32,000 nt of DNA from Paramicrosporidium saccamoebae KSL3 (lineage: Eukaryota > Fungi > Cryptomycota), in NCBI GenBank assembly GCA_002794465.1, contig MTSL01000134.1, forward strand, positions 75,495 to 107,494, written 5' to 3'. The notes under the pieces are model-generated. The model did no database searches, had not been told where the DNA came from, and saw only the letters and a list, made by a program, of their open reading frames with translations. Below, piece by piece: positions 7,529 to 30,892 of this stretch. The position numbers and the translations under genes were made by a program. Position 1 is the stretch's first letter. Every line of letters starts with the position of its first letter.

Positions 7529-8809
7529 ATGCCCGCGGAGATGAAGGACACTGTGGAGTATCTGCAGTCATTGGCTGCGGTACGTGAGCGTTGCGAGGCA
7601 GTGTTGGAGCTGGGCTTGGCAGACAAGTTGGAATGTTTTAGTGTCAGGTTGGATAAATTGCCAGAGGCTGCGGAGATGATTACAAAGTTGATTATTAGGG
7701 ATTATGGTAATGTCGGGCCTGCAGAGGTTGATTCGACGATTGCAAACATTCCACCGCATGGAAGGTGGCGTCATTTTGGAGCTGAGAATGTAGAACGGTT
7801 GATTAAGGAGCTTGAAGTGGCGCTCAACGGAGATAAGATAAAGATTACAACATCGATGCTTGATCTGTTCATTGTGGCAGTATTATTGGATGCAGGCGCT
7901 GGCGATGCCTGGAAGTACAACGATAATGGAAAGACGATTGTTCGCTCAGAGGGACTGGCAGTGGCGGCTCTCCGTATGTTTCAGTCTGGATTATTCTCTT
8001 CGTCAGAAAAGCTGCGTGTTGACTCGAGGGGATTGAAGAATTTAAAAGAATCAGATCTCGTAGCTGGATTCCAGGTGAGCCAAGATAATCCTCTGCTTGG
8101 TGTTGGTGGAAGACTTGCTCTCTTACACCAACTGGGAAACGTCATTGAGAAACAGACGCAATACTTTCCCAAGGACTCTGAGGGATTTTCTCGCCCGGGT
8201 GCATTGGTAGAGTATTTGACCACAAAGCAATCTGCAAAATCCCAAGTCCATATTGACGTCTTTTGGGATCTGGTTATTAATGGTTTTGGAGGAGTTTGGC
8301 CTGAATCGCGGACAAAGCTGAACGGCGTCTCTTTGGGCGATGTCTGGCCTTGTGCAGTACTCGGGTGTCTGATTCCATTCCACAAACTGTCTCAGTGGCT
8401 TTCATACTCTCTAATGGAGCCAATCTCGTACTTTCTCGGGATCGAATTTGTCAATGCCGAAAAGATGACCGGTCTTGCAGAGTATCGAAATGGTGGCCTA
8501 TTCGTCGATTTGAGTATAATTACCCTTAAGGAATCAGCCAAAAAGTATGGAATACAATCTGCAGACTTTTCCGTTCCGACATTTGCTCCTGACAGTCCGG
8601 TGATTGTCGAATGGAGAGCCCTCACTGTTGCACTTATTGATCGATTAGCCATTCTGATGCGCAGTCAATTAAAGGTCAATGCAGAATGCCTGCCGCTCCC
8701 AAAGCTCCTGGAGGCGGGGACATGGAAGGCGGGTCGTGAGATTGCCAAGCAGCTGCGCCCGGGAGGTGGGCCGCCAATCGCGCTCCTTTCGGATGGCACC
8801 TTATTTTAA
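7529..8809 (+). CDS. URC4: DUF1688 protein (Urc4/Urg3-like, uracil catabolism associated), copy A
   Basis: LLDAGAG, RSEGLAVA, GDVW, FHKLSQWLSYSL, TGLAEYRNGGLF, EWRALTV, LEAGTWKAGRE. Confidence 0.88.
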   Translation: MPAEMKDTVEYLQSLAAVRERCEAVLELGLADKLECFSVRLDKLPEAAEMITKLIIRDYGNVGPAEVDSTIANIPPHGRWRHFGAENVERLIKELEVALNGDKIKITTSMLDLFIVAVLLDAGAGDAWKYNDNGKTIVRSEGLAVAALRMFQSGLFSSSEKLRVDSRGLKNLKESDLVAGFQVSQDNPLLGVGGRLALLHQLGNVIEKQTQYFPKDSEGFSRPGALVEYLTTKQSAKSQVHIDVFWDLVINGFGGVWPESRTKLNGVSLGDVWPCAVLGCLIPFHKLSQWLSYSLMEPISYFLGIEFVNAEKMTGLAEYRNGGLFVDLSIITLKESAKKYGIQSADFSVPTFAPDSPVIVEWRALTVALIDRLAILMRSQLKVNAECLPLPKLLEAGTWKAGREIAKQLRPGGGPPIALLSDGTLF

Positions 8810-8853: not shown

Positions 8854-10392
8854 ATGCCATCTGTTCCATGTGGCGACTCGGTCCCATATTTGCAGAGCCT
8901 TCCAGCTATACGTGAGCGCTGTGAGTCAGTTTTTGAGTTGGGAATGGCAGGGAAGCTTGAGCATTTTGAGCTCAATTTGAGCCGGCTCAGTGAAGCAGCA
9001 GACATGATTGACAAGCTGATTATACGGGATTTCGGGAAAATTGACAGCGAGCATGTCGAACAGACTCTACAGAAAATCCCGTTTGGCAGATGGCGGCATT
9101 TTGGCACCGAGAACCAGAAGAGTCTATTGTCAGAACTGGGTGCACTGGACAAGATGGAGTTGACGCGCTCAGTGCTGGATCTGATTGTAGTCTCTGTGTT
9201 GTTGGATGCCGGTGCAGGGGATGACTGGAAGTTTAATGACAATGGCAAGATTTTGATGCGATCCGAAGGATTGGCAGTGGCGACCCTGCGCATGTTCCAG
9301 GGGGGTATGTGGTCTTCAGTGGGAAAATTGCAGGTGGATTCGATTGGTCTAAGGGCAATACAGGAATCAGATCTTATCCACTGGTTCCAAGTTCGAAAGG
9401 ACAATCCTCTGCTGGGAGTAAAAGGACGGCTGGACCTCTTGCACAGATTGGGGAGAGTACTTGAGAGTCAGCCCGTTTATTTCCCCAAGGATGTTAACGG
9501 ATTTGCTCGTCCTGGGTCGTTGGTGGACCACCTACTAACAAGACAATGTGGACACGCGCAGATCCATGTCAATGTTCTTTGGGATGTGGTGATGAAGGGA
9601 TTTGGAGGGGTTTGGCCCGAGTCGCGAACCAAACTAGACGGAGTGTCTTTGGGAGACGTTTGGCCCTGCGCCGCTCTTGGCTTATTGGTCCCATTCCATA
9701 AGCTGTCGCAATGGCTTACATACTCCCTAATGGAGCGCATCACACATTTCCTCGACATTAACTTTCTGGAGGCTGATAAGATGACAGGATTGGCAGAGTA
9801 TAGGAACGGCGGATTGTTTATAGATCTTGGAATTCTGACGCCAAAAAAGTTGTCCAGTTTGGAACCATCGCTCCCATCCGTGTTCAATCAGTTGGTCCAG
9901 TTAATGTCAAACACGACGGCTCAACTAAAGTCTGTCAACCCTGCACTCTCTGAGGGGACAATGGAGGGGATGATGGAAGAGCTCGAAAAGTCCCCATTTC
10001 ACAAAGACCTTTTGGATGCACTGAAAGCAAAATCATTAGAGCAAAGGGCGGACGAGACACCCGGTGCAGCAACCGACGAGTGGATCGAGTATGGAAAGGA
10101 TGATTTATGCCCCGATTCTGGAGTCTTGAGCCAAAAAGAGTCTTTGATTTTGGGGTCGTCATTTCCTCCAGAAAGCCAAGTGATTATTGAATGGCGCGCC
10201 CTCACAGTTGCTCTCATGGATCGTCTAATTGCTCTGATGCGCGGACGTCTAAAAGTATCGCCTGAAAGTTTTTCATTTCCAAAGTTTTTTGTGGCTGGAT
10301 CTTGGAAGGCTGGACGTGAGCTTGCCAAGCAGCTCCGTCCGGCCACGGGTGGCCCCCCAATTTCTATAGACTCTGATGGGACGCTTTTTTAA
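8854..10392 (+). CDS. URC4: DUF1688 protein, tandem copy B with an internal insertion of about 88 aa
   Basis: Same motifs as copy A and colinear with it. The start is placed at ATG 8854 (MPSVPCGDSVPYLQSL) by alignment to copy A (MPAEMKDTVEYLQSL). Confidence 0.85.
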   Translation: MPSVPCGDSVPYLQSLPAIRERCESVFELGMAGKLEHFELNLSRLSEAADMIDKLIIRDFGKIDSEHVEQTLQKIPFGRWRHFGTENQKSLLSELGALDKMELTRSVLDLIVVSVLLDAGAGDDWKFNDNGKILMRSEGLAVATLRMFQGGMWSSVGKLQVDSIGLRAIQESDLIHWFQVRKDNPLLGVKGRLDLLHRLGRVLESQPVYFPKDVNGFARPGSLVDHLLTRQCGHAQIHVNVLWDVVMKGFGGVWPESRTKLDGVSLGDVWPCAALGLLVPFHKLSQWLTYSLMERITHFLDINFLEADKMTGLAEYRNGGLFIDLGILTPKKLSSLEPSLPSVFNQLVQLMSNTTAQLKSVNPALSEGTMEGMMEELEKSPFHKDLLDALKAKSLEQRADETPGAATDEWIEYGKDDLCPDSGVLSQKESLILGSSFPPESQVIIEWRALTVALMDRLIALMRGRLKVSPESFSFPKFFVAGSWKAGRELAKQLRPATGGPPISIDSDGTLF

Positions 10393-11043: not shown

Positions 11044-11400
11044 TAAACTGTTTAATGACCGAGGTGCAGCTCTTTGGCTTGATTAGTCCCTACTCTGTTG
11101 TCAGAATGATCGAGTTTACCACGCTACACCCAGATTGGTACAAGCCGCTTAATCAATGCTTAGTGGCCGATATGCAACTCCTTGATCTGATTAGTCCCTA
11201 CTTTGTTGCCAAATTGGTCCAGGCCGCTTAATAAATGCTTAATGACCGAGGTGCAGCTCTTTAACTTGAACAGTCTCTGCTCTGTTGACCGAATGGTCGA
11301 GTTTACCACGCTACACCCAAATTGTTCCAGGCCGCTTAATAAACTGTTTAATGACCGAGGTGCAGTTCTACTTTGATTTCATTAGCCCCTACTCCTACTT
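11020..11400 (+). repeat. Four degenerate copies (79-109 bp period) of the RPA3-stop / GST-kappa-start junction
   Basis: CC(A/G)CTTAAT(A/C)AA..TTA-ATGACCGAGGTGCAG..T(G/C)ATTAG(T/C)CCCTAC recurs, with start-codon positions at 11055, 11163 (GTG), 11242 and 11351. Confidence 0.88.
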
Positions 11401-12068: not shown

Positions 12069-13222
12069 TTACGTATGGTAACTCTTGACTCGCGAGAATA
12101 AAAACCTGTTCCAGTCTCGAGTCTCGAATTCATAGACACTCGGCAGACCATCCCAAGAGATGGCTGGGGAGACAGAGACGTATCGATTGCAACTCAGAGC
12201 ATTGTGTTTCAGCTGGCTGAGCTCCATCTCAAAGAGCGAGTTGTGTGTGGATTGCGGATCATAGAGAGTGAGATGCCATTTGCGATCGACTGGGCCATAG
12301 CGAAAGTACTTTCCAACAAACATATTGGTCTTTGAAAAGGCAGAGAGTTTGCCTGTCGGAGCTTTCCTCTTTACGCCATACGGAGATACCAAATCAATAG
12401 CTCTGACACCAAACGGAACAAAATCAGGCAGGTCGGGCAACTCTTTCAAAAGACTGACAATCTTCTTCGGCTCCTCGGTGGTAACTAGCAAGACTACGAC
12501 ATTTCCAAGCTCGGCAGGGAACATTCTCAAATATCGATAATAGGTGACCATGTGCACTGGCTGATAGAACTGACCATCATTCATTCCGGGTCGAAAATAG
12601 CTCAGCTTGCAAATATAAACGCCATCCGTCCGCAGTCGTGGCTCCTCAAAGTATGCATTTCGATAAGACGTGGTGGGTCGCGTAAGGGACGGATGTATAC
12701 ACACACGGGTGGTATGGTACATGTGACGCCAAATTTGAGGGCTTCGCGAGTATATAAAGAGCCGTTTGCATGTCCGTGCGCACTCTTCAAGAGAAACGGC
12801 ATGATTTGTGCCAACCCACAGCAGAATCCTCACCATCACTTCTGCCGGAAGATTCAGCGGTTCGTACTCTCCCACCTCCAAACTGAGTTCAGAAAGCAAC
12901 CCGGGCACAACAGCCTCAAACTTTGGCTTCTTTGCTTCACACACCTCTACTGGCGGGATGTTTGCCTCTTGTGTATTGACAACACGGTCAACATCAGGAT
13001 TTAGTCGGAACGCCTTTTCGTAATACTTTATCGCTAAAATGTTAGTACTAAACATCAAATACCTTCTGAAACTTGTCCCAGACGTTCTAGCTCTGACGCG
13101 CGCAAGAAAAGCTCTACGTCGCGTGAACAACTCCCAGAGGCATCCCCTAGTGACAGTTTCGCAGTTTTCTGTACAATATCAATGGCGGAGGAATGTTTGG
13201 TCGGGCTTGCACTAGACGACAT
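12069..13222 (-). CDS. HRT3: F-box protein Hrt3/FBXO9
   Basis: TPR-like EAIKYYEKAFRLNPDVD (after intron 13062-13034), F-box LPAEVMVRIL..SLEECARTCK, and PRLRTDGVYICKLSYFRPG..HMVTYYRYLRMF. Alternative start at 13249. Confidence 0.88.
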
Positions 13223-13420
13223 GGCGGACTCACGAGGGCCAATCATCATTTCCTTATAGAAACATGGACCAATCAGAGGTGAATATGGACGGCTATGAGC
13301 GGATCATCTACATCTTTATTTCTTACCGTCCTTTTCGTCTTGTCCAAACACTTGGGCTTCACTCCCGTTATACTAGTGGGGAGATATCCGTGTGAGCAAA
13401 TAATCTAGAATCTATAGTCA

Positions 13421-14958
13421 TTATTTCTTGTCGTTCTTCTTCGTCTTATTCAAATATTTGGGCTTCACCTCCATTGTATTAATGGGAAGGTATCCATTCT
13501 TCGGTTGGTGTGGCCATAGATCGCCCCATTTGGACTTTCGTGCATCATAGTAGATTTGTTTACCCTGTGAGCGGGGGACGATGAGCCGTTTAAAGGTGCT
13601 GTCTGTGGCACAAATGTCGTTGACAATGTGTCCTTGTCGCTTCAGCGGCCTTCTGATCAAGCGAGGCCACTGAAAAGACTTTTCTGAGAGACTAGAATCC
13701 TCAGTAGGCACTGGACGGGGCCCGCGACGGAGCACTAGATAACTAAATTTCTGATCTACAAACCCCTTTCCAATGGGATGTGTTTCCGTCTGGAACTTGG
13801 AAACTTCGATTCGCTGCGAAAAATGACACCAGCTCCCTATCATGGGGCACTTTTTCTCATGTGGACAAGGCGCCACAATGTGCAGCTCACACCCTCTGTT
13901 AGACCCATCGGAAGCCTCGCCATTCTCGTCAAGGTAGCCTTCTTTGTTAAGAATCTGTCGTCTCGCGTTGGCAATGACACGTGAGCCTTCTGGGGTGCCA
14001 CGATCAATCAACACCAAAATGTCGCGGGTCTGTTCCCACAAAGCGTCCACTGTCATTTTGCGAACCCCATCATCGGGCAAGTCGCCCAGTGAGAATGCCG
14101 CAACGGTCAAGTCGTACTGGCGGGGTCGTGCTGCCAAGGAAAGAAACCGTCGTAGCTCAATCGTATCAATTGGGTTATCAGCGTCGCGTCTGATGCTAGT
14201 GAGCAGTTTACGGGCCATTTGGAGCATTGGCTCGGAAATGTCTACGCCATGGATAGACTTGAGACTATTTCTCCAAGTCTGCTCTGTTGCCCTACGACAT
14301 AATTGACTAGAGAGTAATCGAATACAGAATAGCAGTGGCGGGACCAGTCCCAAAGTCAAACATATTTTGTGGCTTGAAATCTGGAAGCCGCTTATGTACA
14401 TCTGCAAAGACGCGCTCTAGACAGCCATATGCAAATGGCATCTGCCATGCCACATAGGCCATAGTTTCGCGGTCACCGTATTCTAAGATTGTCCTCGGCA
14501 GCTCATCCGGGTCTAAAGGTTATCGTCCAGTAAGACTGGTACGGATGACAAGCGGAACGCCTGTAGACCGCATTTGCGGCAGTATGTATTCGGCCTTGAC
14601 CTTGCAGGCTTCCTTGCTGACCTCTAGCAAACGAGATACATCTGGTTTGAGGATGTGTCGAGGATAGCCTGCAGTTGAGAAATGGCTCCCATGTACCTTT
14701 CAAGACTTGTTCCACGGCAGACATGACGTCGGCAGGCATTTTTGTCAAGTTTGGGTGGTTCTTCCCAAGCAAGTATTCAGCCGTATGACCCTTTTCAATC
14801 GCATTCATAAAAGACTCTTTGACGGACTGGAGCCTTTTGGTGCTGAAACGGCGCATCGAGAAGCCCCAAGCTTTGGGATTCGGCATGGGCTCGACAGTAG
14901 AATCTGTAAACTTTTTCCAAAACTCAGTACGCATTGTAGCCAAGATCTCGACAATCAT
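13421..14958 (-). CDS. RSM22: Mitoribosome small-subunit assembly methyltransferase Rsm22/METTL17
   Basis: Three introns (28, 30, 34 nt) join the exons in frame. Motifs FDFGTGPATA, GTPEG, APCPHEKKCP, WCHFSQR, FSYLVLRRG, WPRLIRRPLKRQGH, YDARKSKWGDLWP. The start may be the Met at 14934. Confidence 0.9.
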
Positions 14959-15351
14959 TCAGATTAGGATCACTGAGCACACGGGATAGTGTGAGGGCCG
15001 ATATAGATTTGTACAACGAGTTATAGTTGCGAGATGGTATGTCTACGGACCAGGACTCCGATAAAAGGTCTTATTACTGTCGCGTAGCGGGGATAAATAG
15101 TATTGACTGTCAGGCAAGAAAGGGGGGTTTGTTTACTGCTACTCTTAGAATAGTGTGGATACACATCTCACTGTTCTCAAATACCCAGCAACTAGGTCTT
15201 CTCCAAACTAGGGAACTATTCTCAAATACCCGACTAATCAGCACTCTACGTCACATTACTAATCTTGCAATAATGTTAGGCATTGTCTATATCAACAACC
15301 GTTGTAGACACATCTTTGCTAAGCATTCAATTTGATGAAACTTTACTTATA

Positions 15352-15454
15352 GATTAGTATCGACGCCTCGATTCAACAAGGCTTTAATGATGGATTAGTA
15401 TCGACGCCTCAATTCGGCGAGGCTTTAATGATGGATTAGTATCGACGTCTGGCA
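15352..15454. repeat. 41-bp tandem repeat (2 full units plus 1 partial) that duplicates the HD1 stop codon region
   Basis: GATTAGTATCGACG starts at 15352, 15393 and 15434. On the minus strand each unit ends AG(A/G) CGT CGA TAC TAA (RRRY*). Confidence 0.9.
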
Positions 15455-15882
15455 TTTATGAACCAGTTGTCTAATTGCTTGAGATCTAGTCCCGTTTTCT
15501 CCATAAGTATCTTCTTCTCGTCTCCCGTCGGAAATGGGTGATCTTTATGCTCCTCTAGCCACATCAGTAAAAGCTTTCGTACATGAGTAGAATGATTTGG
15601 TCGGCGCTTACTAGCTGCTTGTACGTCGGAGTTCATATTGTCAAGCTTCTCAATTCGGGCAACTCTGGCCAAATCAATAAAGTGCTGCATAAGGACAAAC
15701 AACATTTTCTCCATATACTGATCCATAATAGTCCCACAGGTCCCTCGAGAGCTGCCAAAATAATTTTCCAGAATAGCCGGAAGCTCCACGAGTAGCTTAG
15801 ATGATTCCTTGTCTGCAGTATCAAAGGTTCTTGAGAGTAATTCTATAGCCGGAAAGAGCGGATGGGCAGTGATAGCAGTCAT
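15436..15882 (-). CDS. TALE-class homeodomain protein (HD1-like) with MEIS/KNOX (MEINOX)-like N-terminus
   Basis: LLLMWLEEHKDHPFPTGDEKKILMEKTGLDLKQLDNWFINARRRY: W19 to W48 spans 32 residues, i.e. the 3-aa TALE loop is present; I50. The N-terminus has AITAHPLFPAIELL and MDQYMEKMLFVLMQHFIDL. Confidence 0.93.
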   Translation of the reverse strand: MTAITAHPLFPAIELLSRTFDTADKESSKLLVELPAILENYFGSSRGTCGTIMDQYMEKMLFVLMQHFIDLARVARIEKLDNMNSDVQAASKRRPNHSTHVRKLLLMWLEEHKDHPFPTGDEKKILMEKTGLDLKQLDNWFINARRRY

Positions 15883-15924
15883 TCCGCGGCTGGGTGGCTG
15901 AACCTAAGCCAGCATTTCAAGCTT

Positions 15925-16388
15925 TGACAGCTTTTCCTATTATGCACCAATCATCAGATTTGATATCTTGATTGTGATCACTCGAAAATTGAAAAGCGAA
16001 TGTTTAAAAGTAGCTAAAAGTTTTACGGATACTTTCTCTTCTGTGCTACTAAAGCTTCTTGTGAGTAATTATACAGCCGAAAAGAGCGGATGGACAATGA
16101 TGGTGACTTGGCAATTGGGTGGCTGAATTCAAGCCATCCTTGAAAAACTTTGACAGCTTATATTTAGGATCCTCAGCCACCAAATACCAATGGCTCGATC
16201 TTGGTCATTTGGTATTGACTTTATTCAATTGTCGAATCGTGATTAACGGAATGTCGTCTTGTAACAAAAAGTTATGGAATCTGACACAGCTGTGCTAGGT
16301 TAGTATGGAGAGACAATGCTGTACAAAATTGTTTTCATCTTTGTCAGTCACATATCAGCCACCACCTGTCAAACATGTCAAACTGACA
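15925..16388. promoter_or_regulatory. Cluster of TALE-type TGACA(G) sites in the bidirectional HD1/HD2 spacer
   Basis: TGACAG at 15925 and 16151, TGACA at 16282 and 16384, TGTCA at 16342, 16367 and 16376. That is 7 sites in 540 bp, against about 1 expected for a 5-mer on two strands at uniform composition. Confidence 0.65.
16030..16160 (-). pseudogene. Relic copy of the HD1 5' end
   Basis: The minus strand reads HPLFSAV*LLTRSFSSTEEKV against HD1 HPLFPAIELLSRTFDTADKES. GAA has become TAA and the ATG is lost. Confidence 0.85.
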
Positions 16389-16422
16389 ACAAGATCTTGC
16401 GCCCGCCTTATGCAGCCAACAA

Positions 16423-17259
16423 ATGCGCCTCTTTCTTCAGCACACCTCAAGGACCAAGAGTGTAATAGATGAAGCTGTGAGTGCATTTAAACGCCGCAAT
16501 CTGGCTCAAGCGAATCTACTGCTCCAGCAGAATTTGCTTGAAGCTCGTGATATTCATCAGGAGCTTTTATTGGAGGCATCAACTAAGCTGGCAAATGAAC
16601 ATCTTGCCCAGTACGCTCGTTTCGTGCGTACGCTGTCCGACCAGGTGGATCAAAAGGTTTCAGATGTCAATAACACTGGAGCTAGTGTGCAACGTCTGCT
16701 TTTAGTGACCCCGACAGCTCTGATGCAAATGAGCGTCGTAATGTTCCGATTCGCAGTTGCAAACCGCCTTTATCGGTTCCAAGTCAAAATCCTGGAGATG
16801 AGTTTTGTACACAACAGCCTGCAATCAACTGTTCTGACAGCAAAGAGGTTTTCAAATGACATTATCTCTACGTTAACGTCGAGCTACTCTGCTGATTCAT
16901 ATCCTGGCTTGCCTGAAGTGGCCCGCTTGGGACGTGTGACAGGCCTGGGAGAGCGTCAGATCGTAATGTGGTTTACTAATCGTCGCTCTCGCACCAATAA
17001 CAAACGCAGCCGGTCGGGGAAATCCTGCGACCATGAGATCCTGAGCGACGCCAACACACTCTCGCCACCCGACAGCCCCAGTTCAATGATCAGTTTTCCT
17101 CCTCAGCATCGACAATCCCAACTTTCTTCTGATGACAACTTTTTCCAGGAAAGTAGCCGGCAAGCAGAGTTGGAGTTTTACAAGACCATGGTCTGCAATA
17201 ACACCCGCCATCATTGGGATGACTATGCAGAGTTCTTTGCTGATATTGGTAGACATTAA
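16423..17259 (+). CDS. Typical (non-TALE) homeodomain protein (HD2-like)
   Basis: KRFSNDIISTLTSSYSADSYPGLPEVARLGRVTGLGERQIVMWFTNRRSR: F8, L16, Y25-P26, L40, W48-F49-N51-R53 at 60-aa spacing with no TALE loop. Helical N-terminus of about 135 aa and a Ser/Pro plus acidic C-tail. Confidence 0.88.
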   Translation: MRLFLQHTSRTKSVIDEAVSAFKRRNLAQANLLLQQNLLEARDIHQELLLEASTKLANEHLAQYARFVRTLSDQVDQKVSDVNNTGASVQRLLLVTPTALMQMSVVMFRFAVANRLYRFQVKILEMSFVHNSLQSTVLTAKRFSNDIISTLTSSYSADSYPGLPEVARLGRVTGLGERQIVMWFTNRRSRTNNKRSRSGKSCDHEILSDANTLSPPDSPSSMISFPPQHRQSQLSSDDNFFQESSRQAELEFYKTMVCNNTRHHWDDYAEFFADIGRH

Positions 17260-17273
17260 TTTTGAATACAGCA

Positions 17274-17658
17274 TCAAATCTTTTTCATCAGACTTCCAGC
17301 ATCTTGAAGGATGGCTATTAGTGGCGCAGGGATGTTTTTGTTTAGGGTTCCTTCCGGTAGAGAAAATGGAAGGGCGTCTGCTCTTATCTTTCTCTCATCA
17401 AAGGGGGTTTCTGTCCTTGTCTCAATCCTAAAATCATGACTCGTTACATTGTACATACGGAAAGGATGCTGTGGAATTCAAAACTAATCTCTGAGCCTCT
17501 GGCGCCGTGTCAATATCAGTGTTTGGCATGAAAAATGAAAAGAGGGAAGAGCAGCAGTTCTTAAGACAGGAACAGGAGCAGCAGTCCTGAAAACAGGAAG
17601 GGGAACAGCAGCTCTCGAGACAAGAAGAAAAACGGTGGTCCTCAAGATAAGATATCAT
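17274..17658 (-). CDS. Small spliced orphan protein (117 aa) with a Cys-rich N-terminus
   Basis: Canonical GTATGT...TTTTAG intron 17458-17428 (31 nt) joins track ORFs 17434..17658 and 17274..17456 in frame. The N-terminus is four 27-bp/9-aa repeats. Confidence 0.6.
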
Positions 17659-17696
17659 CCAATGTTGACAGTCCCGCCAGCCAGGGCCACGTCACC

Positions 17697-18115
17697 ATGG
17701 AATCACTCTTTTGTCCTGAGTGTCACAACCTCCTTGACCTTCCCGGCGACGAAGATGTTGTGACTTGCACAGTTTGCGGTGCGAAACAGTCTGCGAGTGG
17801 TACGGGTGTGGCGAGAGTCTTATAATACTAGTGTTCGAGGATCGCCCAGTGGTGACGAGGAGTAGGCCGGGACTCTTTGGAGACATTTTCAAGAAACGAG
17901 TAGTCTCAGGCGCCGCTGGAAAAGTGCACAATGACGGCGCCATGATTAAAGAGAAATGCCCCAAATGCGGCAACCCAGAAATGTCCTTCCACACTATGCA
18001 GCTTCGCTCTGCAGACGAAGGACAGACTGTCTTTTACGTATGTCCCAAATGCAGGTACAACATTTTGTTGGTGATTTATAATGTTTGCAGATATAAATAT
18101 TCAGTCAACACATAG
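17697..18115 (+). CDS. RPA12: RNA polymerase I subunit A12
   Basis: [17 protein letters not shown] and [34 protein letters not shown]. Introns 17800-17831 and 18055-18090. Confidence 0.95.
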
Positions 18116-19265: not shown

Positions 19266-19520
19266 GTGGGAATATATATACGAATTAGATGCGTGGGGAC
19301 GTATGTACGAACTGGATGCGTGGGGACGTGTGTACGAATTAGATGTGCGATAATATATATACAATTAGATGCGTGAGAGTATATATAAATTAGATACGTG
19401 GGGATGTATTTACGAATTAGATGGGTATGAATATGTTTACAAACCGGATCTGCAAGAGTATATTTACGGACTGGGTCATAAATTTGCGGACTGGATCTTA
19501 AATAATGGATCTGCAAGAGT
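19266..19520. repeat. Degenerate minisatellite of about 27 bp (about 8-9 units) between the convergent RPC25 and VTA1 ends
   Basis: Consensus approximately GTGGGGA(C/T)GTAT(A/G/T)TACGAATTAGATGC. Confidence 0.85.
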
Positions 19521-19578: not shown

Positions 19579-20562
19579 TTACTTCCTCGGTAAGCTGTGT
19601 AAAATGCTCAATGCAGACTCGAGATTCTTGATCGCAGTTGCAACATCTTCAAACTGGATTGCACTGATAGCAAATCTAGCATGTTTCTCTGCACTCGATA
19701 GTGCCAAAGGGTCTACTACGGGGGACACGGCAGCTGGGATCTGCAACGGGGACTGAGTTGGTTGGACTGTCACTGGTCCTGGAATGGTGATTGCAGGAAG
19801 AACAATTGGAGGCGACGTTCTATGAAAAGCTGTATCTGTCGCCGCACTCTTATTAATATCTGTTGGCATAAATGTCGGACACGACATTTGATGGTTGGGC
19901 ATTTTCGTTGTGTCCGCCGTCTTGTTTATCGTTTCGCTCGTTGTTCTCGGTTCAGGATCAAACTGAAACTGTCCAGACATTGACGGCAAGTGTCCTCCCC
20001 TGCTCACTTCGTCTATTTCTTGGATCTTTTCCGCCGATCCAGGCGGTCCAGACAGCGGCTGCTTGCCCTCATTGAGTGATTTGACAATATCTGACGCCTT
20101 CCATTTTGCATATCGAATCCTCTCCTCAATCTCCTCCCCTAGCTCGCCCAGTCCACGCATGACCTCTAGAAATTGCGACGCAACGAGAAAGAGACGTCCA
20201 GTTTTCTTAGTGGCCTGGCCAGCACGGTCCTCGTTGTCGGCAGCAAGGAAAATGCGACTGGCGAATTGCAGTATAGCTGCGCGGGCCTGCTCGTGGTCGT
20301 GCATTGCAGGTTCGTTGCTAAGAGCCTTCTTCTCCTGCTATCTTAGCACTAGTCAAAGGTTGATTACCTGCTCCAGCTCGCTAAAGAGCGCTTTAATAAA
20401 GGCATCATTTTCAGGAGATTTCTGGTATGGCTTGCACAAAGCAATACTCACTGCATAGTAGCCACAGTAATATGCAATGACTGGCTCACGGGTTTTTAAT
20501 TCTGACGCTCGCTGCAAGTAGGGCAAGAGGTGCCTAAAATCTTCAGGACACTCGGGGAGCAT
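19579..20562 (-). CDS. VTA1: ESCRT/Vps4 regulator Vta1
   Basis: LLPYLQRASEL..EPVIAYYC, FLAADNEDRAG..FLVASQFLEVM..IRYAKWKA, and C-terminal AEKHARFAISAIQFEDVATAIKNL. Intron 20367-20338. Confidence 0.95.
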
Positions 20563-20612
20563 GCGGGATTTGCAGCAATTTTCCTTTTATTATCCGTAGG
20601 ATACATGCACAA

Positions 20613-21295
20613 CTAACTTGACATATAATTCATGGCCAGCACCATTACAGCGAACACAAGGATCATGAGAAAACCAATCAGATGCGAATTGTTTAGCCCA
20701 GATTCCATCGGTCTGGGCCGGACACTGGGTGGCAATGGTGGGGGTATCTTTTCGTCATCTGCACGGGGCTTGGGCTTGTATCCACAGCTGCGACATGCAA
20801 AGGGACGTGACGAATAAGCCAATTGCTGTCGTTCCTCGGCCGACATCCCAACATATCCGATGGCACCACGATCTTCCACCGTAAAATGATCCCGGATGGC
20901 GATGAGCATGGTACGCACCCCCCACGCCGGTTGCCAATGCTCCGGATGGAACCCAGTGACAGACAAACATATCTTTGTGCCTGTTTGGAAGCGTCCGCTA
21001 GGAGTGAGGAACATGAGTGTGGGTGGCGAGAAAGGATAGTCTGCAGGAAAGATAAGACGGCCGTGGTACAGACCATATTCATAGGGACTCTCGTTGGGTC
21101 CTTCAAGTGTAAAATGCCATTCTAAGTAGTTGTCCTACACGTAAATACAAGGCCGTTGGCCATACCTCTAAAGGATGCACAGTAAAGGGAAGGTCGCGCA
21201 GGTTCTTGTCTATTTCATCAAACTCCTTCTTTAGCCTCTTAATAGCTATTGTTGAGCAGCTTGGTAGGAAAGGTACCTGGATTATTGCGCGACAT
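20613..21295 (-). CDS. UBC6: Tail-anchored ubiquitin-conjugating enzyme Ubc6/UBE2J
   Basis: MSRNNPAIKRLKKE..HPLE|DNYLEWHFTLEGP..TPSGRFQTGTKICLSVTGFHPEHWQPAW with a C-terminal TM helix. Introns 21276-21246 and 21165-21135. Confidence 0.93.
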
Positions 21296-21366
21296 TTCGT
21301 CGTGGCAGCTATTCCAGAGGCTTCGGCCACGGACCAATCACCACTTATGGGGCGAATTACCTTGGT

Positions 21367-22553
21367 TTATTCCAAATATGGTGTACTTACAATCTGTTCT
21401 AAATCTTCGCACAGCTCTTGCCAAGAGTACTCTTTTCCAAATTGCTGCTTTACTCCATGGTCCGATCTAATTCTGTTTAGTACGCTTCGCTTTACATATC
21501 TCCGAAATTCCGTCTCGTCAGAAGAATCTAGCGATAGCAAGGCGGATGAACTTTGCAGAGATGAATTGGCAGTGTCGGACATGTAGATTGAAACGCCCAA
21601 ATAGTCACTCTCTTGTTCTATAGAATCAGCCCTTCCCAACTTCCAAGAGCTCCTCTCAGCATTCCCGAGGGATCCCAGGACAGAAAAGTTTTTCAAATTG
21701 TTTGTGGGAACCTTGCCTTGAGAAGCTGTGCCAAATCCGACCTCTGATATACCAAGCGGCATTTTCTGAATTCCACAGTACGGGAAGAGATTTGGTGTGA
21801 CAAATGTCTCGAGTAGCCCTCCAACTAGACAAGAACTTTGAAGATTAAACGACAGAGAGTCGTCAAAAAAGAGCGGTAGCAACCGATTCGAATATTCATT
21901 CAGACAGGTCAGGTTTATCGCCTTGTCGGCTACGCAGCCTCGATAATCAGGATCAAAGCCAGTAAACAGAGCAATAGTATCACAAACTCTCACGCCGAGA
22001 TTGTCTTTTGCCAATGTCAGGAATGATGTGGACAGTCCACCCCAGAAACCCACCGATTCTGTAACAGTCAGAACCCTCTCGAGACTGTCGCATTCCTCAG
22101 CAGCCAGACGCAAAGCATCTAGAGCAGTTTCTTGACACTGTGCCGTCGCTTCTATTCCAGCTTCGTGTAGACCAGTGTTCTCAACCGATGAAAAGATGGG
22201 AACATTTGTGGGAATGTAGCTTTGAGGAAGATACTTTGTAAAATTGAACCGTTGCCAGCCGCTTAGCTGGCTTGGTGGCGCAGATACCTCAGATTCGATA
22301 ATCATGCTCTTTTGATGTGTCTCAAAAACTACAGTTCTTGGAGTTGACTAGAAAGATTAGGACCCAACCTTGTGGATGTACTCTCGATCCTAGCAAGGTA
22401 TTGAACAAAGTCTCGTCATTTGAGTGGTAAAGCTTTGCCTGCTGGCTCTAAAAATATAGCAAACACAAGATTGGATACAATAGAATTCCAAAAGTGAGAC
22501 AAGGACGTATTAGCAGAATCGCCAAACTGCAGAACGATAGTCTGACCAGCCAT
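21367..22553 (-). CDS. DML1: Misato/Dml1 tubulin-FtsZ-like protein
   Basis: MAGQTIVLQFGDSANTSLSHFWNS, TPRTVVFE and LRLAAEECDSL..GFWGGL. Two introns (31 and 34 nt) lie upstream of the track ORF. Confidence 0.85.
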
Positions 22554-24812: not shown

Positions 24813-25965
24813 TTATTTCTGGCGCCCAAAGATGCGTTTTGCAAAAGATTGCAGCACGACACCTAGTTTTCTATTGCCATTTCCAACACTTTCAATCCGG
24901 AGAGAGAGGGCATCTTGATATGATTTTTCAAACAACCGGAACTCGGATTGCAAATCCAGATCATTATAGATGCCCCTGACAACAGCCTCAGACTCTATAT
25001 TTTTCTGTCCGTAGTGCTGTGCCAAGGAAGCGCGCATTTCCGCAGTTAAATTCTTGCTTTTCAAAGCCGTAACGATAAGCCAGGTGCATTTTCCTTCAAC
25101 AATATCAGTTCCAATTTTACCAATCACCTTGGGGTCGCCAAAACAATCGAGATAGTCATCTTGAATTTGAAACAATTCTCCCAGATCAATTAGAACCGAT
25201 TCTAATTCGGGTAAAACGGCTTCTTCAAAATATCCACCAACGAGAAGTGCGGCGATGACAGGCAGGTAGAACGAGTAATAAGCCGTCTTGAATCGGACAA
25301 TCCGACGATAAAGATCCATACTAAAACGGTTCAAATCGCGTGGTCCGTCCACAGGAGCCGTTAGCAGGTCCAAAAGCTGTCCTAGCTCTGTGCGCATTTT
25401 CGTATCAATGAACAATTCGAACAGAGGGACGTATGCCGGATTCTTCCCAAAGAAGCGCCTGAGGGTCCTGAATATCATTGAATGGAGGACGAAACAGTCG
25501 TTGATGGCCACCATTCCAACCTGTTCAGTGCGATACCAACATTCTTGGCCGCGTCGGGTGAGAGATGAATCCATGATGTCATCAGCCACCAAGAAAGATG
25601 CCTGAAGCTACAAAATGACAAAACAACAAGTCGACTACCCACTCGATACACCACCCAAGGGCCACGTATGCTTGCTGCTCCGCAGGCGAAAGCTTTCCCT
25701 CACGCATAACGGCCCCAGTTTCTGCCACGCTAAGCCCTCTATTCATCTTTCCTATAGAAATGCGTGAGCGTCCTAGGTATGTCTAGATACCTCCCAGCAC
25801 ATTATAGTCGCACATTTTGTCTATCCATCCTGAGGCAGGCTCTCCAATGCCAAGTTTCTTCATCTCCTCAAGAAAGTCATTTTTCAAATCCTTGTATGAG
25901 CGGTCGAATTCTTCCCGGAAGGGGCTCATGGTCTCGACCGGGAAAAGCGTCTCTATCCCGGCCAA
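24813..25965 (-). CDS. ERG20: Farnesyl diphosphate synthase
   Basis: YNVLGGKMNRG, LQASFLVADDIMDSS (FARM), FQIQDDYLD, GTDIVEGKCTW. Introns of 39 and 31 nt. Confidence 0.96.
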
Positions 25966-28068: not shown

Positions 28069-29052
28069 TTACAATCTATCGGGGGGACGCATCCCATCGA
28101 GCCATCTCATCGTCAGTGCATAAACGGTAAATATTACTGCATTTGTTGGAAATGCGCGCATCACAGTAGCCGTGGTGCCTCGGAAGAGGCCAGGAATGCC
28201 TTCATTTTTTACAATCAATCGAAACCATGTTACTATGGAAGTGTTGGTTGGTTTACTTCCGGGGATGGGAAAGAGTGGCTGGGCTTGAATTCTTGTTTTG
28301 ATAACATCGATGGGATATGTAGACATCCAGGCGACAATGCCACTAACACCTCCGGCAAGCATTAATGCCCGGTTGTCCAAATGGCCCTGATTCTCTTCAG
28401 TGGTCCATGCGCGTCTCATGCCCTCAAAGCACGCAAAGTATGATCCATAGCTAGGCGTCTCTCTTAGAATAGTGGGCCATAAGCCCCGATAACAGCCAAC
28501 TAGGCCATGCCGCCTCCAAACCTGTTTCATGCAATCTGACGGTGATCGGAACTCGCCCTTTCCAATCTGGTTCTGCACTTGGATCTTACCCAATTCCACA
28601 GGTCCGCTAATGTAGCTGTTCACAAATCCTGATCCCGCACCCGCAATAAAAATCTGGCCGAGTGTCGGCGTGTGTCCGGGTTGTAGTTGGCTCTCCAGGA
28701 AGAATCCGTAGACACCAAATAATAGAGTGTTAATTGCGGTTACACCGACTAGTGGGGAGGAGACACCCTTAAAAAGACCCGGGACTCGCTCCTTCTGGAG
28801 GATGGAAGCAAAACAATGTAGTGTGTTGCGGTACAGAGGCGACGAGTGGGGTTGGGACTGTAGTCGGACTTTGACAGTGTCAAAAGGGTGGCCAGCGAGC
28901 ACGCCAGAGGCGCCTGCAACAGTTCCAGCTATCACATTCATGCCGGTTACGCTCCATAAACAGCTGGAAAACCATGATGGTCGGCGGTCGTCATCCGGCG
29001 ACGCCATAGGAGAAGGGACGTCAAGGCTCACCTTTCCAAATATAGAAGGCAC
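28069..29052 (-). CDS. Mitochondrial carrier (SLC25A29/45/48, Ymc/Crc-like)
   Basis: Three carrier repeats: GHPFDTVKVRLQ, GPVELGKIQVQ, YPIDVIKTRIQ. Substrate not assignable by eye. Confidence 0.92.
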   Translation of the reverse strand: MPSIFGKVSLDVPSPMASPDDDRRPSWFSSCLWSVTGMNVIAGTVAGASGVLAGHPFDTVKVRLQSQPHSSPLYRNTLHCFASILQKERVPGLFKGVSSPLVGVTAINTLLFGVYGFFLESQLQPGHTPTLGQIFIAGAGSGFVNSYISGPVELGKIQVQNQIGKGEFRSPSDCMKQVWRRHGLVGCYRGLWPTILRETPSYGSYFACFEGMRRAWTTEENQGHLDNRALMLAGGVSGIVAWMSTYPIDVIKTRIQAQPLFPIPGSKPTNTSIVTWFRLIVKNEGIPGLFRGTTATVMRAFPTNAVIFTVYALTMRWLDGMRPPDRL

Positions 29053-29074
29053 ATTTGGTCACACGCCATAATGT

Positions 29075-30892
29075 TTATTGGATTGCAAGAAGGGTATCGA
29101 AAAGGCGATACCTCCTGTTGTTGGAGACTCTGTACGATTTGATACATAGCGACGTGGGAAGAGGTGAAGATACAAGCCGATTCATGCAGTCTTCAAGGTA
29201 CTCCAGAACGACAGGATTGTTGGCCAAGTTACAAGGCTGTAATCCGTTGAGAAATCGATTTGCGTCCTGATGTGCAACAATAATACTAATGGAATCCGCC
29301 CCGTCCGTGACATTGAGAGTAAACATAAATGTGAATCCATCAAAATCGGTCCCACAAGACGAACAAGAATGAGCTGCAGCGACAGGAGCGGTTGTCCGAC
29401 ACTTGGAACAACTTTGACGACTGAATTCGGCCACACGAGCCGGCCTAAAGTTTGTAATTCGACCCTTGATTAGGAATTTGGCTAAATCCTCCTGTGCGTC
29501 AAGAACAGTTCTTATTGCAGTTACCGCGATATTTGTGTGAAGGACGGCTAAGCATAAGAGACAGCGTGGACATGCTTACTGGTAAGGGGTCCTGATGACG
29601 TCTGCTTAGTGGGTGAGGTGGTTGTGGTGCGGGCCTGTTTAGCGGGCAAGGCATCTTGGGTGTAAACTTGTCTGGTTGGTGTGTGAACTTGTCTAGCAGG
29701 CGAGACGTTCCGACTACGAACTCTTTGGGTGGGAGAGACATTTGGACCATCATCCCCTCTAGTGGGTGAAACATTTGGATCATCATCCTCTCTAATGGGT
29801 GAAACATTGGAATCACCACCCCATCTAGCGGGCGAGACGCTTTGCTCACCAACTCGACTCTTTGTCGGATCCTGAGAGCTGTAGTGTCCAAACAAGGCAG
29901 TTTTCCTTTCATTCAAGACACGAGCCTCTGCACTCGTCGCGCCAAGGACAAATATCTTTTCTGAATTGGAATGATCACCATGAAGAACAGCAATTAATCC
30001 GGCGGAACTGAGATCTCCATCGACGGGAGATGAGATTATTTTTGAGCGTACATTCAAAACTCTAATAATCTGTCCTTCTTGCAATTGTGCCGCACGATCA
30101 GAAAAGTTGTCCCAGAATGTTGTGAGCAGTAGACGATGTTCATAGTCTGGCGAAAGATCAAAGTGGCTGGGATTAGCTCGAATTTCCACATTTGCAGTGT
30201 AGTCGGTGAGTAAGGCAGTGACTTGACTGGGTTTGTAGGTCGGAAGGATACGAACAACTTCTGCAACAAGGTCAAAAAAAGTGTTGGGCTGGATCAGGTC
30301 AACGGTTAGCGTGGGTCTACTGGCTGACGGTTTGCTCGGAGAGGTCCTTACAAGCGCTGCAGTATGCCCGGTCCTGGCAGAGATTCGGTTCAGGATACGA
30401 CGCTCCTCAGCCTCTACGGGTCTCGCTGGACTAGCTACCCAACTGCCCGACTCATCTCGCGAGAATGTAGTAAAAGCAGCCCAGTTTGTTGAAATGGCCT
30501 GCAAGGATCCTTGGAACGTTTGGACTCTCATGTGACGAAATTGAACAATGTCATCTTCGGCACGAACATTGGGAAACAGCGACTCGGATGACCGGAATAT
30601 CGACACTGATAACCCTGCCGAATAGTCTCCAAATTCTAGCTGCAAAGAGTCGTCCACCACTATCATATTCATCATGAAATCTGTAATATATAATGCTCAC
30701 GTGTACTGTACATTACCTGTTCCTCTTGTGGGGTACGGCTGTTTATATGCCACAACTCGGCCATAAAAGTTCAGGGATGGCCCGGGCGCAAGCTCACTAA
30801 TGGGAGTATACTGATAATTTCGTGTCTAGAGTCATTAACACTGATGACTTTTATGACTACGGTACCTTTTCACAATCGGTACTGACCATCAT
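29075..30892 (-). CDS. POT1: Telomere ssDNA-binding protein POT1, full length (OB1-OB2-linker-OB3/Zn)
   Basis: Introns of 40, 36 and 32 nt join YQYTPISEL..NFYGRVV..PTRGTDF..IVVD (OB1), LTDYTAN..TFWDNF..IRVLNV (OB2) and CSKC..CSSC..FTLNVTDG..LCIKSYRV..YRLFDT (OB3); 569 aa. Confidence 0.88.
29605..29841 (-). repeat. In-frame 33-bp (11-aa) repeats in the POT1 linker
   Basis: SVSPARWGGDS/NVSPIREDDDP/NVSPTRGDDGP/NVSPTQRVRSR/NVSPARQVHT. Confidence 0.9.

Follow-up and report, generated by a model that had tools for sequence, protein, structure and literature searches.

Three CTGTCAAA-type elements in the spacer between the divergently transcribed homeodomain genes HD1 and HD2 of Paramicrosporidium saccamoebae are preserved in a relative, against a background that evolves at about the neutral rate. 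In our estimate there is a fair chance, somewhat short of even, that these three ancestral elements are functional and are read by a TGACA-specific TALE protein, with HD1 as the obvious candidate, which would place the pair under auto- and cross-regulation. The hypothesis is of an ordinary kind, if in an unusual organism; it is plausible but supported in part only, and transcription factors that have sites in their own promoters are so common that a specialist would not be surprised.

The HD1/HD2 gene pair

The stretch of DNA analysed here (the window, 32,000 nucleotides, to which all positions refer) could be assigned through the HD2 open reading frame (16423..17259, plus strand), which has a single exact occurrence in public assemblies, i.e. 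on contig MTSL01000134.1 of GCA_002794465.1; a product identical to the 148-aa HD1 is called on the same contig. MTSL00000000 is the accession of the P. saccamoebae genome paper (Quandt et al. 2017, eLife), in which the divergent pair was already published as PSACC_01945/01946 and noted to be Basidiomycota-like (Quandt et al. 2017). In Basidiomycota, sexual identity is under the control of HD1/HD2 pairs, and MAT-like heterozygosity or allelic divergence at the pair is absent in the sequenced P. saccamoebae diploid (Quandt et al. 2017). The same paper makes no statement on the HD1/HD2 spacer.

HD1 (15882..15436, minus strand) encodes a 148-aa TALE-class homeodomain protein (Pfam Homeobox_KN, E = 1.6e-18) that ends ...NWFINARRRY*, and HD2 encodes a 278-aa non-TALE homeodomain protein (Pfam Homeodomain, E = 1.3e-10) with the motif WFTNRRSR, i.e. 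T at position 50, whose nearest solved structures are the DUX4 homeodomains. A TALE-type HD1 and a typical HD2 are therefore divergently transcribed as in a basidiomycete-type HD locus. The 540 bp between the two ATGs (15883..16422) hold seven TGACA/TGTCA cores by site count and are the shared bidirectional promoter of the published pair.

Elsewhere in the window, gene calls on the record fuse unrelated neighbours (F-box/Rsm22, UQ_con/Vta1 and POT1/mitochondrial carrier), and the call for farnesyl-diphosphate synthase is truncated and begins just before the DDIMD motif. The annotation is therefore unreliable for defining promoters where such fused or truncated calls are found (12069-14934, 19579-22305, 24813-25614 and 28069-30892). 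The window also contains two adjacent tandem DUF1688 paralogues (7529-8809 and 8944-10392).

Enrichment of TGACA cores

As the initial annotation had counted, the seven cores are TGACA at 15925, 16151, 16282 and 16384 and TGTCA at 16342, 16367 and 16376; its further claim that five of them lie within 107 bp just upstream of HD2 holds for 16282-16388, including CTGTCAAACATGTCAAACTGACA at 16366-16388, and the 12-mer that it had described as kept 12/12 in both copies of a diverged duplication is found as CTTTGACAGCTT at 15922-15933 and 16148-16159.

For background, the window was extended by two neighbouring genes to 39.5 kb, giving 23 other intergenic intervals. Within these 39.5 kb, the density of cores is 13 per kb in the HD spacer vs 2.1 per kb in the other intervals (19 cores in 8.9 kb), the runner-up among intervals of at least 200 bp reaching 5.3 per kb, and the excess in the pre-chosen HD spacer has a P of about 0.001; the whole window contains 89 cores, i.e. 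2.8 per kb. Dinucleotide shuffles of the spacer yielded a mean of 1.85 for the seven observed (P = 0.0016). A blind scan of the 39.5 kb by first-order Markov simulations returned P = 0.005 for at least five cores in 107 bp and P = 0.085 for at least seven in 464 bp. Based on these density, shuffle and blind-scan P values, the enrichment of TGACA in the spacer is real but moderate, and it is strongest in the HD2-proximal cluster. In an unbiased k-mer test, TGTCAAA is present four times in the spacer vs eight times elsewhere in the window (P = 1.6e-5), and CTGTCAAA three times in the spacer and once elsewhere.

One more TGACAG had been reported near 17665. It is indeed present, isolated, at 17666..17671 (plus strand), where by motif position it precedes the ATG (17698) of an RPA12-like zinc-ribbon gene by 32 nt, but TGACAG occurs at chance-level density in the window (23 in 32 kb), and one of the relative's two contigs (L002, see below) stops short of the matching region. 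Between HD2 and the RPA12-like gene, a 27-bp unit forms three tandem copies (GAGCAGCAGTTCTTAAGACAGGAACAG, 17549-17629); the automatic call for the latter gene begins inside this repeat (17577, non-ATG), its true start being likely the ATG at 17698.

Tandem duplications and the origin of the sites

The seven sites are not independent, as two were made by a tandem duplication and two by a 9-bp direct repeat. The duplication is old, has a period of about 226 bp (15800..16255; unit 1, 15800-16027; unit 2, 16028-16255) and was delimited by three repeat families and a three-way alignment of both copies and the relative. It comprises the 5'-most ~83 bp of the HD1 coding sequence together with DNA upstream of it, and unit 2 contains a decayed pseudo-5' end of HD1 without ATG and with an in-frame TAA. 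Both copies are 69-73% identical to each other, a divergence about equal to that from the relative, in which the unit is single copy.

In the three-way alignment, copy 1 of CTTTGACAGCTT (15922..15933, minus strand) reads AAGCTGTCAAAG on the HD1 sense strand, where its TGTCAAA begins 47 nt upstream of the HD1 ATG. Copy 2 (16148..16159, minus strand), identified by repeat search and alignment, lies in the duplicated unit with inverted GGTGGCTGA and TCAGCCACC on its flanks. On the HD2 side, CTGTCAAACATGTCAAACTGACA (16366..16388, plus strand) has two direct TGTCAAA, which precede the HD2 ATG by 56 and 47 nt, followed by a third, inverted TGACA at 16384; the sites at 16367 and 16376 constitute the 9-bp direct repeat (TGTCAAACA / TGTCAAACT). 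Independent site origins may perhaps number only two, i.e. an HD1-side element and an HD2-side element that was then micro-duplicated.

At the extreme 3' end of HD1 begins a 41-bp unit in three tandem copies (83% and 68% identity; 15341-15463), which takes in the last HD1 codons and the stop (...RRRY*) and is single copy in the relative. With the 226-bp duplication at the other end, HD1 thus has a lineage-specific tandem duplication on either side. The decayed HD1 5' copy (16028-16110, minus strand) reads ..HPLFSAV*LLTRSFSSTEEKVS. Because it is nearer to the relative's HD1 N-terminus (LLSRSFNSTGKELS) than is the live copy (LLSRTFDTADKESS) at several residues, these sequences hint at a fast-evolving HD1 N-terminus. 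More intergenic tandem arrays lie at 19266-19503 (periods of 27/78/105 bp) and 11130-11287 (79 bp), and intergenic tandem duplication appears to be common in this genome.

A history of this kind could in itself have produced the array, i.e. a TGACA word that had arisen by chance, or two such words, would have been copied by the 226-bp and 9-bp duplications, and any conservation would reflect low divergence. The shared origins of four of the sites, the frequency of intergenic tandem repeats here and the blind-scan value for seven cores in 464 bp (P = 0.085) all fit this explanation. Collapsing the duplication, however, raises the density (six cores in 315 bp vs 1.37 in dinucleotide shuffles, P = 0.0012), and the comparison with the relative bears on the question further.

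Phylogenetic footprint

Apart from the window's own proteins, protein searches with HD1 and HD2 gave one match per gene, both from JGI metagenomes. One contig of this uncultured relative (L003, 1402 bp) carries the 3' part of HD1, the full spacer and the 5' part of HD2, and the other (L002) carries HD2 and downstream sequence. Of 203 pattern matches in a metagenome scan based on the HD2 alignment, none was confirmed as a further relative, and an exact-pattern metagenome scan for AGCCACCACCTGTCAAANNTGTCAAA gave no match; since the searches returned no others, the footprinting rests on this one relative. For the source environment of the JGI samples, 3300042203 and 3300042204, we found no paper naming either.

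HD2 and its counterpart in the relative (P0002) share 66-71% identity, another comparison giving 72% at the protein level. Neutral identity, as estimated from 4-fold degenerate sites, is 0.66-0.70 (~0.68), and the relative's spacer of 316 bp has an identity of 0.70 over its alignable length, i.e. near-neutral. Against this near-neutral bulk, conserved blocks are easily recognised.

Phylogenetic footprinting had been proposed as a check by the initial annotation. Three of the six orthologous sites are kept exactly in the one relative: the site at 15925/16151 reads CTTTGACAGCTT in both organisms, the site at 16367 reads CTGTCAAAC in the window and CTGTCAAAT in the relative, and that at 16376 reads ATGTCAAAC and GTGTCAAAC, respectively. 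The other three are not kept. TGACA at 16282..16286 (plus strand), beside the palindrome CACAGCTGTG (16285-16294), and TGTCA at 16342..16346 (minus strand) are peculiar to P. saccamoebae, the relative having AGACA and TGCCA there, and TGACA at 16384 is TGATA in the relative. Every kept site contains TGTCAAA, the conserved cores reading CTGTCAAAG (TGACAGCT on the opposite strand), CTGTCAAAC and ATGTCAAAC, whereas the three unkept sites consist of the TGACA core only. By direct reading of the alignment, 27 of 30 bases within sites are identical to the relative, vs 0.67 outside sites; a gapped alignment gave 28/30 (0.93) and over-counted the site at 16282. In the relative's spacer alone, the TGACA 5-mer occurs three times vs 0.96 expected (P = 0.064, not significant) and TGTCAAA three times vs 0.095 expected, these copies being orthologues and hence not independent events.

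Conservation above the neutral rate in this relative was found for three of the six sites, for the 12-mer and for a 52-bp block upstream of HD2 (16356..16407, plus strand; 49/52 identical), which comprises CAGCCACC, the two TGTCAAA, the palindrome CAAGATCTTG (16390-16399) and GCGCCCGCC. At a neutral identity of about 0.68, a 5-mer would survive by chance in about 15% of cases, and at least three of six 5-mers would stay intact with a P of about 0.04, which is in line with multiplied chance words. The longer tracts are not: CTTTGACAGCTT is the longest invariant run among copy 1, copy 2 and the relative (permutation P = 0.001, non-coding part), 49 of 52 identical positions are far beyond chance, and substitutions within the 9-bp repeat are confined to the bases between the two TGTCAAA cores. 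We therefore regard duplication of chance words as an improbable account of the array.

The HD1 stop one residue after RRR (...RRRY*) is also conserved in the relative. Further upstream in the relative's HD1 (about 1035-1090 of L003, codons 27-40 in minus-strand view), the frame of the first 33 codons differs from that of the remainder, and a stop codon separates the two. Taking out a 43-nt GT...AG interval (GTCCAT...GACAG) would join both parts in one frame, and P. saccamoebae has 23 extra codons there; the break may be a very short intron, a frameshift or a sequencing error.

Position relative to the start codons

In sense orientation, TGTCAAA begins 47 nt upstream of both ATGs (at 15929 for HD1 and 16376 for HD2), and both copies are at -48 in the relative. 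Among the other 22 gene upstream regions listed, TGTCAAA is present in none, and a TGTCA core near -47 is present in one, i.e. at -46 of a 5'-truncated gene call.

The equal distance to both ATGs could simply reflect promoter geometry. In that case, the conserved elements would be core-promoter, transcription start or 5'UTR elements, or sites of another factor that merely contain TGTCA, and HD1 would not be involved. Both conserved elements are sense-oriented and fixed in their spacing to the ATGs, from which they lie 40-60 nt away, and the 52-bp block on the HD2 side is kept whole, including CAGCCACC, CAAGATCTTG and GCGCCCGCC, which do not contain TGACA; at 16-67 nt before the HD2 start codon, this block might itself be a core promoter or a 5'UTR. 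The top-enriched word of the spacer, moreover, is a different one, GGTGGCTGA. On the other hand, TGTCAAA is missing upstream of the other 22 genes listed and is therefore not a general core-promoter word, the single TGTCA core near -47 belonging to the truncated call. Furthermore, the decayed duplicate no longer fronts a gene and yet retains CTTTGACAGCTT 12/12, and the element fits the TALE consensus over 9 bp. Weighing these points, we consider a role as promoter or 5'UTR elements, or as sites of another factor, possible, if on the unlikely side.

A conserved, symmetric module in this early-diverging fungus would be a more specific form of the regulatory reading, in which a sense CTGTCAAA at -47/-48 of both genes would allow HD1, with or without HD2, to fix both genes in the same on or off state. 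This version is rather unlikely in our view. If true, it would be the first described cis-regulatory logic for an HD1/HD2 locus outside Dikarya, and it would imply that the HD1 partner already recognised TGACA and fed back on its own locus before the Basidiomycota mating system arose.

Two other features near the start codons were dismissed. An upstream open reading frame before HD2 could begin at the ATGs at 16305 or 16412, neither of which is kept in the relative, and CAGCC at -10..-6 of both genes, likewise not kept in the relative, was put down to coincidence.

A second motif family

The top-ranked k-mer of the spacer is not TGACA but GGTGGCTGA, together with its inverted form TCAGCCACC (four copies vs one elsewhere in the window, P of about 2e-8). 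In the k-mer test, GGTGGCTGA was located at 15893-15901 and 16118-16126 (plus strand) and, as TCAGCCACC, at 16173-16181 and 16355-16363. Its core (GGTGGCTG/CAGCCACC) is retained at two of three orthologous places in the relative, the third reading CAGCCATC. Among 5-mers, AGCCA with eight copies is slightly ahead of TGACA with seven. As both GGTGGCTGA and AGCCA are more enriched than TGACA, the spacer is generally rich in repeated words; two or more families of recurrent motifs are present in it, and TGACA is one prominent word among others. Conservation of the GGTGGCTGA family points to one or more further factors.

On the HD1 side, 21-22 bp separate GGTGGCTGA, the one other motif that recurs, from TTTGACA, whereas on the HD2 side it is 3 bp away from TGTCAAA and the order of the two is different. 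A second half-site at a constant distance from TGACA, as in a composite operator, was not found in the spacer, a result that counts against a heterodimer-operator model.

Together with AAGCCA, GGTGGCTGA also makes up two inverted repeats of the form TGGCT-N7-AGCCA (15896-15912 and 16121-16137). A structural element built from the inverted GGTGGCTGA/TCAGCCACC arms that flank the 12-mer was considered and rejected, the predicted fold being weak (z = -2.1 for the window sequence, -0.36 for that of the relative), and Rfam and tRNA searches gave no match to an RNA gene in the spacer. TCAGCCACC was likewise rejected as a general promoter word, its sole other copy in the window (25582) encoding the VADD motif of farnesyl-diphosphate synthase. 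Finally, the spacer contains two perfect 10-bp palindromes, CACAGCTGTG at 16285-16294 and CAAGATCTTG at 16390-16399; the latter, inside the 52-bp block, is identical in the relative, and the former has one mismatch there.

HD1 as a candidate binder

The best solved-structure matches of HD1 are PKNOX1, TGIF2LX, MEIS1/2 and TGIF1, all of which share an identical helix 3 (NWFINARRR), and HD1 also has a basic N-terminal arm (KRR). In the TGIF1-DNA crystal, the helix residues Arg219-221 make base contacts to 5'-TGACA-3', and with the arginines of the N-terminal arm the recognised stretch reaches about 8 bp (PMC6158717). The consensus of TALE sites has a TGACA core, with TGACAG(C/G)T or CTGTCAA as the optimal site, and the DNA in the TGIF1 crystal is ATTGACAGCTGTCAAT (PMC6158717), of which TTGACAGCT is present in the conserved 12-mer CTTTGACAGCTT. 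At the sequence level, seven TGACA cores thus occur in the same organism as an encoded WFINARRR protein. The initial annotation had assumed that such a helix reads TGACAG(C/G)T. The identity of the HD1 helix and the TGACA cores agree with this, but the form that is conserved is TGTCAAA and not TGACAG as such. By analogy with TGIF1, in which a truncation just after the homeodomain lowers affinity, though only by half (PMC6158717), the end of the HD1 helix one residue past RRR may weaken binding.

The HD1-proximal element CTGTCAAAG might instead be a response element of the CAAAG type for an HMG-box protein, as the conserved 12-mer has TCAAAG on the HD1 sense strand. In fungi, HMG-box factors act upstream of mating-type homeodomain genes, e.g. 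the HMG protein Prf1 of Ustilago maydis, which induces the b homeodomain genes through pheromone-response elements, and sex-related HMG loci exist in early-diverging fungi. Both conserved elements on the HD2 side, however, read TCAAAC and not CAAAG, and conservation reaches across TGACAGCTT, which an HMG core does not need. An HMG-box site is therefore very improbable here.

A TALE site remains the reading that we follow. It would start from an ancestral core of about 315 bp with three selectively maintained CTGTCAAA-type elements, each in the sense orientation of the gene that it precedes: one 47 nt upstream of HD1, which would later have been doubled by the 226-bp duplication with both copies retained, and a tandem pair before HD2, at distances of 56 and 47 nt. 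A TGACA-reading TALE protein would occupy these elements and co-regulate both genes, and if HD1, alone or with HD2, were this binder, an auto- and cross-regulatory loop would result. The lineage-specific copies at 16282, 16342 and 16384 may add to the array or be incidental. We purely infer that the sites are protein-binding, that the binder is a TALE protein and that it is HD1, and the same goes for any sign of the regulation; another TGACA-reading factor or a core-promoter function would be the alternatives to HD1.

The claim of a regulatory array of TALE sites, as put forward initially, thus stands in part. Enrichment in a shared promoter, an identical HD1 helix 3 and conservation of three of six sites and of the 12-mer speak in its favour, but the relative lacks three of the seven sites, GGTGGCTGA ranks above TGACA, and no composite HD1+HD2 half-sites were found. 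What has been gained are three short elements at defined positions that fit the predicted specificity of HD1, by which the question of a regulatory unit is open to direct bench test, and CTGTCAAA as a motif for a genome search of candidate targets.

Comparison with known homeodomain systems

Among known systems, MEIS, PKNOX (PREP) and TGIF (4XRM, 5BNG and 6FQP; Guca et al. 2018, PMC6158717) resemble HD1 in being Homeobox_KN proteins with the same helix 3 and a basic arm, and the spacer elements contain TGACA as their sites do, the 12-mer also having TTGACAGCT. Unlike these proteins, HD1 is a 148-aa fungal protein and a predicted binder, with a helix 3 that stops one residue past RRR. In contrast to their sites, the palindromic TGACAGCTGTCA is not present in the spacer, and a PBX-type TGAT half-site is not adjacent to its elements.

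In the basidiomycete U. maydis, lga2, frb52, clp1 and rbf1 have the bbs motif to which the bE/bW heterodimer binds (PMC2916880), and the direct targets of the heterodimer in that study are downstream genes, not the b promoter itself. Unlike the Basidiomycota, P. saccamoebae is a rozellomycotan, and its pair is without reported allelic divergence (Quandt et al. 2017). The arrangement of a TALE-type HD1 and a typical HD2, divergently transcribed around a short spacer, is the same as in basidiomycete HD loci. Loci of the basidiomycete type are also multiallelic or heterozygous, and heterodimerisation is governed by hypervariable N-termini.

Saccharomyces cerevisiae a1-alpha2, in which alpha2 is TALE-like, acts on the MATalpha alpha1/alpha2 bidirectional promoter of its own locus, and its operator is one composite site of two different half-sites at a fixed spacing. 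The P. saccamoebae spacer differs from this operator in having several TGACA-type sites with no recognisable second half-site at a constant distance. For the proposed logic, in which a homeodomain pair would control its own locus through a bidirectional promoter, yeast a1-alpha2 at MATalpha would by analogy be the closest precedent.
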